The position numbers were made by a program, and so were the translations under genes. 39,996 bases of DNA from Octopus bimaculoides (Eukaryota), in assembly GCF_001194135.2 (NCBI RefSeq), contig NC_069005.1, positions 7,905,589-7,945,584 on the forward strand, given 5' to 3'. Shown piece by piece: positions 29,519 to 29,997 of the stretch. The notes beneath the pieces are model-generated. The model did no database searches. It saw nothing but the letters and a program-made list of their open reading frames with translations, and had not been told where the DNA came from. Positions within the stretch are counted from its first letter, which is position 1. Each line of letters opens with the position of its first letter.

Positions 29519-29997
29519 TCAGAAACTGCTCAACAAACTTATAGAATTTTAACACTTCGAGCCTATTTCATGTAGAAAGTAAAGCAGTAAAGCAGAAAGC
29601 TTCTGACGGTTCGTCTCTTATGACTTGTTCCAGTTCCAAAAAGACAGATCTGGAATCAATCATTTCATACCTTTCCTCTTGTGGCACTTATCTACCAGAC
29701 ACTTTACTGCTGACTTTTTTGGTAAAATAGACAGAACCTCAAGAATATAACATGTGGCCATTGAAAGGATTGTGCAGAGAGAACAAATTATTTTTCCATT
29801 TATGTCAACATAGCTTCTTATACAAGGTTGCTAAATTTACTATTGTCTTCTCAATCTATTTGTAAAATTAACTGAATTTTGTATAAAAATTTGAAAATTT
29901 TCTTCTGAAATATATATATATATATTTATATATATATTTAAAAAAAAAAAAATTGAAGTATTGTGTATTCAATGAGTTTGTTGAGCAGATATTTTGA
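29519..29997 (+). promoter_or_regulatory. Intronic long-range RNA duplex between exons 7a and 7b (29519-29547 pairing with 29967-29997)
   Basis: CTGCTCAACAAACT (29526-29539) is the exact reverse complement of AGTTTGTTGAGCAG (29975-29988); extendable on both sides with G-U pairs and small loops. Confidence 0.75.

Follow-up and report, generated by a model that had tools for sequence, protein, structure and literature searches.

A conserved intronic RNA duplex between two alternative calumenin exons in octopods, with a probable role in exon choice

We found that the intron between the alternative exons 7a and 7b of the calumenin gene in Octopus bimaculoides carries two complementary elements that are preserved in Argonauta hians. 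On the comparison of these genomes, a functional and conserved long-range intronic RNA duplex (a "zipper") is well supported, and it probably has a role in controlling which of the two exons is used. In addition, it is plausible that the zipper sterically blocks the joining of 7a to 7b, which the initial annotation of this DNA had put forward as a candidate mechanism of exclusivity. The duplex presumably forms in vivo, and its effect would be inhibition rather than activation of 7a-7b joining. The window, that is, the whole stretch of DNA analysed, comprises 39,996 nt (contig NC_069005.1, positions 7,905,589 to 7,945,584, forward strand); coordinates refer to positions in the window unless another sequence is named.

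The exon pair and the intron between its members

The exons were placed using tblastn together with a splice-site model. Exon 7a encodes (T)DIYGNEDEDDEDEDDPDWVNEEKEQF...SDVDQ, a divergent "DIY + acidic" copy, and exon 7b encodes (S)...SDKNK, a canonical-like copy. The two are paralogous tandem exons of the same phase with about 50% protein identity to each other, and their identities to human CALU are 44% (7a) and 63% (7b). Both the 7a isoform and the 7b isoform read through to HDEF*. Annotated proteins with 7a only were found in O. bimaculoides (P0125/P0126), O. vulgaris (P0002), O. sinensis (P0122), and A. hians (P0123), and those with 7b only in O. bimaculoides (P0001) and O. vulgaris (P0121); no protein with both 7a and 7b was found among the annotated proteins of these octopods. 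The mutual exclusivity assumed in the initial annotation is therefore borne out by the annotated proteins, in which each of these tandem homologous exons of shared phase is used alone.

If 7a and 7b are joined, the frame shifts and translation meets a stop 34 codons into 7b, ahead of the last junction. If both exons are skipped, a stop appears two codons into the last exon. Since both exons are 2 mod 3 in length, frame and nonsense-mediated decay (NMD) already remove the 7a+7b products, and frame incompatibility alone can account for the absence of double-exon proteins; the exons of the oyster have the same phases. Nevertheless, the 7a donor must bypass 7b, because 7a-only proteins are annotated in four species and the 7a protein sequence is 89% conserved, which reflects protein-level constraint.

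The features of the locus are as follows.

29276..29487, + strand: exon 7a, 212 nt, phase 1 to 0, 2 mod 3
29488..29493, + strand: 7a donor GTGTGT, same sequence in Argonauta
29500..29517, + strand: local hairpin GCATTGC-CGGT-GCAATGC, only in Octopus; its GGTGCAATG part is conserved
29519..29524, + strand: outer helix, left strand TCAGAA, weak (AU/GU)
29526..29547, + strand: arm 1, core CTGCTCAACAAACT (same in O. vulgaris and A. hians) and extension TATAGAAT
29550..29560, + strand: inner helices, left strands TAA (29550-29552) and ACTTCGA (29554-29560)
29561..29952, + strand: looped-out intron interior, not alignable with Argonauta
29953..29963, + strand: inner helices, right strands TTGAAGT (29953-29959) and TTG (29961-29963)
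29967..29988, + strand: arm 2, extension ATTCAATG and core AGTTTGTTGAGCAG (same in O. vulgaris and A. hians)
29989..30044, + strand: AG-free zone up to the 7b acceptor, with 55 nt separating the last AG of the arm and the acceptor AG
29992..29997, + strand: outer helix, right strand TTTTGA, overlapping the branch-point-like TTGAC (29994-29998)
30045..30247, + strand: exon 7b, 203 nt, 2 mod 3

The intron is 557 nt long, from the donor G at 29488 to the acceptor G at 30044. The pairing that the initial annotation had described in it was reproduced in every part. The core is formed by CTGCTCAACAAACT (29526-29539), the exact reverse complement of AGTTTGTTGAGCAG (29975-29988), and gives 14 perfect base pairs. 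It extends to 29547/29967 through a G-U pair, 2 bp, an A-A mismatch, and 4 bp, and 29526-29547 with 29967-29988 thus make a 22-nt pairing with two mismatches. On the other side, across a 1 × 3 internal loop, TCAGAA (29519-29524) forms six pairs, one of them G-U, with TTTTGA (29992-29997). Arm 1 begins 31 nt past the 7a donor, and a TTGAC motif at 30008-30012, with its A at 30011, lies 14 nt past 29997. The loop (29548-29966) has no exon inside, and both arms belong to one intron.

Arm 2 includes a GAGCAG that contains the last AG ahead of the 7b acceptor in both Octopus and Argonauta. Candidates for the 7b branch point, whose location is deduced, were taken only from yUnAy motifs and AG-exclusion zones; those in the AG-free zone are TTGAC (A29997), TTGAT (A30002), TTGAC (A30011), and TTGATGAC (A30023/A30026).

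Conservation and stability of the duplex

The comparison of orthologous introns, which had been named as a check of the duplex, showed that both arms are conserved in A. hians although its intron is 2,988 nt long and cannot be aligned with that of Octopus outside the conserved parts. The core arms are identical at 14 of 14 positions each (L005, 14018-14031 and 16728-16741). Between Octopus and Argonauta, the only colinear intronic matches in the whole gene are 79 nt downstream of the 7a donor and 29953-29990. We used the divergence at four-fold sites of the calumenin gene as the neutral yardstick, in place of divergence time. These sites differ at 28 of 48 (58%), so that neutral sites are near saturation, and the chance of 28 neutral sites remaining unchanged is about 2e-11. 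Conservation under such divergence is the decisive evidence. The O. vulgaris intron is 96% identical to that of O. bimaculoides and is too close to inform (neutral chance of unchanged arms about 0.17). A search with the squid-like Logan protein P0003 returned no further annotated cephalopod genome, and the comparison stands without decapodiforms and Nautilus.

The pairing was compared between Octopus and Argonauta on a manual alignment, as MAFFT misplaced the right arm around ATTC. Two single substitutions in the inner helix keep the strands paired through wobble: Argonauta has A for G29559, turning G.U into A-U, and G for A29956, turning U-A into U.G. Besides these, one pair was gained and two were lost, and the core is invariant, in three sequences of which two are 96% identical. 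No double compensatory substitutions were found among the three sequences, which are effectively two independent ones. Furthermore, the duplex of Argonauta is longer (-54 kcal/mol), and there GGTGCAATG pairs instead with the distal GACCATTGCATT in a species-specific outer helix of 12 bp. The imperfect duplex spans about 44 nt in Octopus and 66-80 nt in Argonauta. Coding read-through of arm 1 was rejected: the indels between Octopus and Argonauta are not multiples of three and break the frame, and the conserved flank is thus non-coding.

Folding against shuffled controls, another check that had been proposed, also favoured the duplex. The pair probabilities of the core were 0.996-0.999 in the intron of O. 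bimaculoides and 0.93-0.999 in the full introns of the three species, including the 2,988-nt intron of Argonauta. The minimum free energy (MFE) of the whole intron had a z of -3.7, and the MFE structure includes the helix. A perfect inverted repeat of at least 14 bp appeared in 0 of 300 dinucleotide shuffles of the intron (shuffle maximum, 12). The gapped bridging score was 56, compared with 26.4 ± 3.9 in shuffles (0/500, z 7.7). This statistic is a gapped local alignment score of Watson-Crick and G-U pairs, and it replaced RNAduplex on the 150-300-nt ends, a poor statistic because shuffled GC- or pyrimidine-rich ends chain many weak helices. Five other calumenin introns were without a bridging duplex (z -0.4 to 2.2).

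In the region from exon 6 to exon 8, the arms were found to have no competing partner. The strongest other pairing reached -15 to -19 kcal/mol, which is 8-12 kcal/mol weaker than the -24 to -27 kcal/mol of the cognate 22-mers, and it was not conserved. In these folding models, the duplex is real and thermodynamically dominant. However, the window holds about 10 perfect inverted repeats of at least 14 bp within 1 kb that are not of low complexity, and none of them is shorter than the present one, whose length others share. When 557-nt segments were drawn at random from the window, 2.3% had the same bridging score or a higher one. The repeat would therefore be only mildly significant in one genome, and it is the cross-species conservation that leads us to judge the element more than chance.

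Donor-to-branch distance and the introns of other molluscs

Previous studies place the limit for steric interference at about 50 nt and describe distant branch points that enforce exclusivity (PMC7969005, PMC5740500). The initial annotation had claimed that the duplex reduces the effective distance from the 7a donor to the 7b branch point to 45 nt or less. This figure can be reached (31 + 14 = 45 nt) with the outer helix, but the conserved core alone gives 38 + 23 = 61 nt, above the limit. The lower figure relies on the weak outer helix, which loses a C-G pair in O. vulgaris, where C29520 is G. The linear distance from 29488 to the candidate A30011 is 523 nt in Octopus, and the corresponding distance is about 2.8 kb in Argonauta; both far exceed the limit of about 50 nt for linear steric hindrance, whereas in Crassostrea, Solemya, and Lottia the short length of the intron by itself puts the distance below it.

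The position of the arms differs between the two genera. The left arm lies 31-38 nt from the donor in Octopus and 32-52 nt in Argonauta, and the right arm lies 56 nt and 181-212 nt from the acceptor, respectively. In Octopus, the end of the stem is 14-23 nt ahead of the candidate A30011. In Argonauta, the path is 32 + ~29 = ~61 nt only if branching occurs at the distal TTGAT (A16801 of L005) and about 180 nt otherwise. A conventional branch point would make the path about 75 nt long in Lymnaea and about 180 nt long in both Argonauta and Elysia. Octopus has an AG-free tract of 55 nt, and Argonauta has one of 211 nt. Since this tract runs from the GAGCAG of the arm to the acceptor, a branch point adjacent to the arm is permitted. 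The steric model would hold in Argonauta only with the distal branch point, and the 211-nt tract permits that.

The 7a/7b exon pair is pan-molluscan, and the duplication of exon 7 of calumenin had already occurred when bivalves, gastropods, and cephalopods diverged. The length of the homologous intron is only 54 nt in Crassostrea (oyster), 57 nt in Solemya, and 63 nt in Lottia; in Solemya, the introns next to it are 2-4 kb. The short intron in these three molluscs supports the idea that proximity matters. Meanwhile, the long introns of Elysia and Lymnaea each contain an unrelated bridging duplex of about 30 bp in the MFE structure (Elysia, z 7.2, 0/500; Lymnaea, z 2.5, 13/500). A scan of metagenomes returned only intron-less invertebrate calumenin cDNAs (L001-L003).

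We tentatively prefer the explanation, which seems to us quite possible, that the zipper makes an expanded intron act like a short one, so that the sites of 7a and 7b cannot be used together. The duplex would tie the RNA 30-50 nt past the 7a donor to the RNA just upstream of the 7b branch and polypyrimidine region, and most of the intron would be looped out, some 420 nt of it in Octopus and about 2.7 kb in Argonauta. The zipped intron of octopods would then behave like the ancestral molluscan intron of 54-63 nt. With U1 bound at the 7a donor and U2 at the branch region of 7b, the two would sit too close together, or the anchoring and branch region of U2 would be occluded, and the two sites would not be used jointly. 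The 7a donor would skip over 7b and splice to the last exon, and 7b would be included only in transcripts that lack 7a. Any 7a+7b product that escaped the block would be out of frame, with the stop 34 codons into 7b, and would go to NMD.

A wider rule for molluscan calumenin is possible but doubtful: the intron would be either physically tiny or, once expanded, zipped, with pairing replacing shortness to stop joining. Such a rule would cover the conserved duplex of octopods together with the independent duplexes of Lymnaea and Elysia. Observations in other molluscs also count against the steric model. The long intron of Aplysia (1,000 nt) has no significant bridging duplex by the gapped bridging score, and the oyster model isoform X3 joins both copies through a 68-nt intron.

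Known systems and alternative explanations

The exons 2/3 of alpha-tropomyosin and 4a/4b of OGDH are known steric-hindrance pairs, and OGDH has distant branch points with a long AG-free polypyrimidine tract (PMC7969005). The calumenin pair resembles them in having exactly two homologous exons, a proposed clash of U1 (upstream donor) with U2 (downstream branch point), an AG-free pyrimidine tract from arm to acceptor (211 nt in Argonauta), and an intron of 54-63 nt in other molluscs. However, the short distance is linear in those genes and constrains intron size, whereas it is 523 nt to about 2.8 kb in calumenin. For this class, no description of proximity created by base pairing was found in the literature searched. 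Linear steric hindrance fits only some 9% of human mutually exclusive pairs, and joining reads are absent for most of the frame-incompatible ones (PMC5740500).

Most two-exon exclusive clusters lack an established mechanism. A duplex that recreates proximity would explain how exclusive pairs outlive the expansion of introns by transposons, and this prediction can be tested by mutation. The calumenin locus is a compact test system, with a core of 14-22 bp and natural variants in the form of tiny introns, zipped long introns, and the unzipped intron of Aplysia. If the steric explanation is true, exclusive splicing would have a further mechanism, different from linear steric hindrance, docking/selector competition, and clean-up by NMD, and calumenin would be the first case based on RNA structure outside arthropods and vertebrates. 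The element would also extend conserved long-range RNA structure in splicing control to molluscs, for which no case was found in the literature searched.

The docking/selector systems (the exon 4, 6, 9, and 17 clusters of Dscam1, 14-3-3zeta, Mhc, srp, and human ATE1) likewise combine conserved long-range intronic pairing with exclusive exons, and the range of pairing lengths listed for them takes in the 14-22 nt of the calumenin core (PMC6027157). However, calumenin has no second selector or competitor, and because the loop holds no exon, the duplex cannot choose an exon by looping out others. We therefore rejected this model, as neither a competing partner from exon 6 to exon 8 nor an exon in the loop was found. 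A 2013 study in RNA Biology, which PMC7969005 and PMC6071210 cite, reportedly describes a two-exon cluster in which the linear interval gives steric hindrance and exon choice is set by RNA structures that mask splice sites or bring them together. Both cases invoke interval size or branch-point proximity together with RNA structures, but structure is reportedly not the source of the hindrance there.

In vertebrate FGFR2, compensatory mutagenesis of the stem formed by IAS2 (ISE-2) and ISAR between exons IIIb and IIIc reportedly showed that it activates the upstream exon and represses the downstream one. The FGFR2 stem reportedly works by approximating control elements. As in FGFR2, two conserved complementary elements were found several hundred nucleotides apart inside the intron that separates exclusive exons, forming a single stem without docking/selector competition. 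However, the calumenin arms lie at much shorter distances from the donor and, for Octopus, from the branch region, and they belong to another phylum and another gene.

A switch of isoform ratio like that of IAS2-ISAR is a serious but rather unlikely alternative. The stem would set the amounts of 7a and 7b, either by masking the 7b branch or anchoring region or by placing bound regulators beside one exon, and the exclusivity itself would come from splice-site competition together with frame and NMD. The architecture is the same: both elements sit within the separating intron, the loop is free of exons, and a competing partner is absent. The lengths of the two exons are 2 mod 3, and the extended pairing covers the branch-point-like TTGAC at 29994-29998 in Octopus and a TATGAC in the 12-bp outer helix of Argonauta. 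In addition, the distances to the acceptor (56 versus 212 nt) suit approximation or masking better than a strict distance rule, and the sequence of the arms is stricter than pairing needs, which could mean recognition by a protein. However, a general masking of 7b would hinder the splicing of exon 6 to 7b, the source of the apparently canonical isoform. The switch also leaves the homologous intron of 54-63 nt in three molluscs unexplained, and no regulator motif was identified.

Improbable in our judgement is a zipper that promotes splicing, in which a shorter donor-branch distance would allow efficient removal of a long intron, the outcome being 7a+7b transcripts bound for NMD (regulated unproductive splicing) or a compacted pre-mRNA. 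There is precedent for it, which also speaks against the steric model: zipper stems in yeast (RPS17B/RP51B, RPS6B, and APE2) are placed close to the donor and the branch point and promote splicing at structural distances of around 20 nt (PMC2536676), and reviews class bridging structures as generally activating (PMC11802352). The calumenin stem resembles them in Octopus, with its strands near the donor and branch point of one intron; in Argonauta a long distance separates the right strand from the acceptor. The effective zipped intron would be 78-216 nt in four species, a size that is readily spliced. However, yeast stems promote the removal of their own intron, and efficient removal of this one would join 7a to 7b into a frameshifted mRNA. 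For this reason promotion is unlikely, and the selective value expected here is opposite to that of the yeast zippers. Furthermore, 7a-only proteins are annotated in four species and 7a is under protein-level constraint, and it is difficult to see why selection would retain an element that eliminates the 7a isoform.

A platform of double-stranded RNA apart from splice geometry, such as an ADAR substrate, an editing inducer, or a site for another dsRNA-binding protein, seems very improbable. Heavy A-to-I RNA editing is established in coleoids, the duplex (about 44 nt in Octopus to 66-80 nt in Argonauta) is long enough for dsRNA-binding proteins, and it lies less than 40 nt from exon 7a. However, there is no exon-intron pairing, and analogous duplexes exist in Lymnaea and Elysia, which to our knowledge are not known for extensive recoding. 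The position of the duplex exactly between the alternative exons and the short-intron pattern in molluscs also point to splicing.

Finally, a chance inverted repeat or a transposon remnant with terminal inverted repeats and no function is scarcely credible: the many inverted repeats of the window, the 2.3% of equal random segments, and an AT-rich interior with a microsatellite would suit it, but the arms are unchanged in Argonauta against a four-fold-site difference of 58% and an otherwise unalignable intron. The suspicion that the arms might be pieces of a repeat family was not borne out within about 130 kb of cephalopod sequence. Each arm occurs exactly twice per locus in the three species, and searches of the 40-kb window, of 28 kb from Argonauta, and of 60.7 kb from O. 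vulgaris turned up no further copies. No target-site duplication was seen at the flanks (AGAAA / ATATT), and with no further copies in the sequence searched, a MITE-like inverted repeat was ruled against. A search of 29200-30300 against Rfam gave no match at E ≤ 1. The element may nevertheless have originated from a transposon and been exapted later. The intron interior includes a (TA)n/poly(A) tract, at about 29908-29954, that is not the same in O. bimaculoides as in O. vulgaris.

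Calumenin and its duplicated exon

The gene in the window is Octopus bimaculoides calumenin on the + strand, and the rebuilt full-length query was a 100% match to UniRef A0A0L8FHN1 (protein P0001). Its exons are listed below.

18821-18951, +, coding exon
20149-20345, +, coding exon
22878-23044, +, coding exon
25525-25585, +, coding exon
29276-29487, +, exon 7a (212 nt, 2 mod 3)
30045-30247, +, exon 7b (203 nt, 2 mod 3)
32931-33035, +, last exon, ending HDEF-stop

Exons 7a and 7b are paralogous copies of one exon, with 44% and 63% identity, respectively, to human CALU. The reading frame stays open to the stop with 7a alone or 7b alone. 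Inclusion of both leads to a stop 34 codons into 7b, and when both are skipped the last exon is open for just two codons before a stop. Proteins with 7a only are annotated in O. bimaculoides (XP_052832783.1, A0A0L8FIB5), O. vulgaris (isoform X1), O. sinensis, and Argonauta hians (isoform X1), and proteins with 7b only in O. bimaculoides (A0A0L8FHN1) and O. vulgaris (isoform X3); no protein with both was found in the public annotation of these octopods. Thus, the mutually exclusive pair proposed in the initial annotation holds at the annotation level. The known vertebrate CALU exon pair is another exon than 7a/7b (PMC4494069). The homologue of that vertebrate mutually exclusive exon (first EF-hand region) is 20149-20345, which is single-copy in octopus, and thus molluscs and vertebrates duplicated different calumenin exons. 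Our literature search found no report of the molluscan 7a/7b pair.

Tandem copies A ("DIY + acidic") and B ("DMWP") in the same phases were found in Crassostrea angulata, Lottia gigantea, Solemya velum, Aplysia californica, Lymnaea stagnalis, and Elysia marginata. Judging from these sequences, the exon-7 duplication is old and pan-molluscan. In addition, oyster isoform X3 (P0005, 400 aa; about 3493-3560 of the Crassostrea locus, L007), an annotated model, carries both copies in frame. The model splices from an internal GT located 14 nt before the usual donor, so that its intron is 68 nt long. In the Lingula anatina protein P0004 (480 aa), the N-terminal ~150 residues are repeated almost exactly, probably an assembly or annotation duplication.

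The intronic duplex and its conservation in octopods

The 7a-7b intron (29488-30044) is 557 nt long, and 29526-29539 is the perfect complement of 29975-29988. This core helix extends to 29547/29967 by a G-U pair, 2 bp, an A-A mismatch, and 4 bp, and an outer helix, TCAGAA (29519-29524) with TTTTGA (29992-29997), lies beyond a 1x3 internal loop. All of these positions and pairings, taken from the initial annotation, were correct on rechecking. Beyond them we found two inner helices, TAA/TTG and ACTTCGA/TTGAAGT, and the whole duplex (29518-29561 with 29952-29998) has a predicted energy of about -40 kcal/mol. The duplex is part of the intron's MFE structure (MFE z = -3.7 against shuffles), and core pair probabilities were at least 0.996, also when both exons and 100-nt flanks were included. 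At 29908-29954, in the looped-out part, a (TA)n microsatellite runs into poly(A), and this tract has a different length and sequence in O. vulgaris. Five assembly gaps (6759-7187, 8227-8638, 11330-11852, 23639-23720, and 38567-38666) lie outside this intron.

In the O. vulgaris locus the arms are identical, but this says little because the whole intron is 96% identical; the sole substitution close by (C29520 to G) costs the outer helix a C-G pair. In the Argonauta hians locus (L005), 7a (13754-13965) and 7b (16954-17156) are separated by 2,988 nt. BLAST of the whole Octopus gene against this locus gave just two intronic matches in colinear position, namely the 79 nt that follow the 7a donor and 29953-29990. 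The remaining matches were exons and multi-copy repeats at non-colinear places, and the other exon flanks were alignable over just 2-20 nt. Within and next to the calumenin introns, short interspersed repeats (15541-15618, 18488-18583, 20814-20910, 30889-30947, 32624-32773, and 33490-33586) match several such places and represent a repeat family common to both octopod genera.

Both 14-mers are identical in Argonauta (14018-14031 and 16728-16741), with no other copy in L005. Across four exons of this gene, 28 of 48 four-fold degenerate sites differ between the two genera (JC distance ~1.1), and therefore the chance of 28 neutral sites remaining unchanged is ~2e-11. The Argonauta duplex is longer (13997-14062 with 16694-16773; predicted -54 kcal/mol), with a 12-bp outer helix (GGTGCAATGGTC/GACCATTGCATT) absent from Octopus, and when the entire 2,988-nt intron is folded, it is part of the MFE structure and its core pairs have probabilities of at least 0.93. 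Pair changes were counted on a structural alignment made by hand. The core does not vary, nor do GAAT/ATTC and TAA/TTG. Two positions of the 7-bp inner helix differ, each by a transition that preserves the pair (G.U to A-U; U-A to U.G), and beside the core there is a loss of two pairs and a gain of one. The initial annotation had proposed aligning orthologous introns to look for conservation and compensatory changes. The arms are conserved in Argonauta with wobble-compatible changes, but the Octopus-Argonauta alignment contains no double compensatory change. Therefore, the evidence for pairing is arm co-conservation and wobble-compatible change, not classical covariation. Taken together, it is very likely that selection maintains this RNA duplex and that it is tied to the 7a/7b region.

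Coding read-through of the conserved flank was ruled out by interspecies indels that are not multiples of three. A docking/selector system was rejected, as each arm has a single partner and no exon lies in the loop; the best alternative partners from exon 6 to the last exon were 8-12 kcal/mol weaker and not common to both species. No Rfam family matched the duplex region. A repeat-family origin of the arms, named in the initial annotation as something that would refute its reading, was not demonstrable, with no further copies in the window or the O. vulgaris and Argonauta loci.

Chance expectation and intron length across molluscs

An inverted repeat of 14 bp was reached in 0/300 dinucleotide shuffles of the intron. 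The bridging score (gapped WC+GU score of the intron's first 150 nt against its last 250 nt, window sizes picked with data already seen) was 56, versus 26 +/- 4 in shuffles (0/500). However, 2.3% of random 557-nt segments of the window and 6.7% in the O. vulgaris locus reach 56. Thus, the duplex exceeds chance when judged by shuffles, but far less convincingly when judged by real octopus sequence. The window holds ~10 non-low-complexity perfect inverted repeats of at least 14 bp within 1 kb, among which the 7a-7b repeat ties for shortest. In a single genome, a repeat of this kind is findable somewhere in 40 kb by a careful reader. Another of the ten, a 16-bp perfect inverted repeat (30655-30670/31405-31420), lies inside the next intron, between 7b and the last exon, and shows how frequent they are; BLAST gave it no colinear counterpart in Argonauta. 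Downstream of the gene, a large inverted repeat (37622-37726/38148-38252; 105-nt arms 421 nt apart, 89% complementary, 68 bp perfect) adjoins simple repeats and looks transposon-derived.

Inter-copy introns and bridging test (z; shuffles reaching the score)
Crassostrea angulata (duplication at L007 3268-3757): 54 nt; not applicable
Solemya velum (L010 about 19088-19144): 57 nt, neighbouring introns about 2.4 and 4.2 kb; not applicable
Lottia gigantea (L009 5199-5261): 63 nt; not applicable
Lymnaea stagnalis: 462 nt; z 2.5, 13/500
Octopus bimaculoides: 557 nt; z 7.7, 0/500
Elysia marginata: 627 nt; z 7.2, 0/500
Aplysia californica (L008 8479-9478): 1,000 nt; z 1.6, 45/500, not significant
Argonauta hians: 2,988 nt; z 9.4, 0/500

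In Crassostrea, Lottia, and Solemya, the inter-copy intron is far shorter than its neighbours (up to 4 kb in Solemya). Five other Octopus calumenin introns gave no bridging duplex (z -0.4 to 2.2). The Elysia (L012 6689-6740 with 7047-7099) and Lymnaea (L011 4017-4056 with 4336-4372) duplexes have about 30 bp and -34 to -36 kcal/mol, are in the MFE structures with high pair probabilities, and have no sequence in common with the octopod arms. These few species are suggestive of a pattern in which the intron is either tiny or zipped, with Aplysia as the exception.

Possible modes of action

The duplex may act as a pair-specific block, steric or occlusive, that would stop the 7a donor from joining 7b; the initial annotation proposed the steric form, with the donor-branch distance brought under ~50 nt. 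We hold this reading tentatively, because only it explains both the bypass of 7b by the 7a donor and the short-intron pattern: 7a-only mRNAs need that donor to bypass the nearer 7b acceptor, and in three molluscs the inter-copy intron is so short that any branch point lies within ~50 nt of the donor. A donor-branch threshold of ~50 nt is documented and is exploited by distant branch points with long AG-free tracts (PMC7969005, PMC5740500). The collapse to ~45 nt or less in the initial annotation is reached with the weak outer helix, but the core alone gives 61 nt. The left arm begins 31-38 nt from the donor in Octopus and a similar 32-52 nt from it in Argonauta. In both species, the last AG upstream of the 7b acceptor is inside arm 2, the downstream arm. 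Therefore, the 211-nt AG-free, pyrimidine-rich tract with a 20-nt U run that precedes the Argonauta acceptor (L005 16742-16951) would permit a branch point beside the arm; it starts exactly at the conserved arm, a signature associated with distant branch points. If the candidate TTGAT (A16801) is the branch point, the Argonauta path is ~61 nt, equal to the Octopus core value. The copy-B acceptors of Aplysia and Elysia are also preceded by pyrimidine tracts (~100 nt).

Against the block, ordinary branch points give paths of ~180 nt in Argonauta and Elysia, Aplysia has a long intron without a significant zipper, and the oyster X3 model joins both copies using an internal donor. Furthermore, introns of 54-63 nt may be spliceable in molluscs, and the frame rule already hides any 7a+7b product. 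An FGFR2-like ratio switch is a somewhat less likely alternative than the block; the FGFR2 IAS2-ISAR stem has the same placement as the Octopus duplex. A splicing-promoting zipper is quite improbable; yeast zipper stems of the same geometry have the opposite effect to the proposed block, enhancing splicing at structural distances near 20 nt (PMC2536676), and a recent review counts bridging structures among the activating ones (PMC11802352). An ADAR/dsRBP platform and a duplex with no function each have little probability.

Our literature search found no RNA-structure-linked mutually exclusive splicing in molluscs. The closest known systems are the FGFR2 and yeast stems, steric exclusion in tropomyosin and OGDH, which follows the same logic as the proposed block but is linear there, and Dscam-type competing structures, which are alike in general theme and different in architecture.
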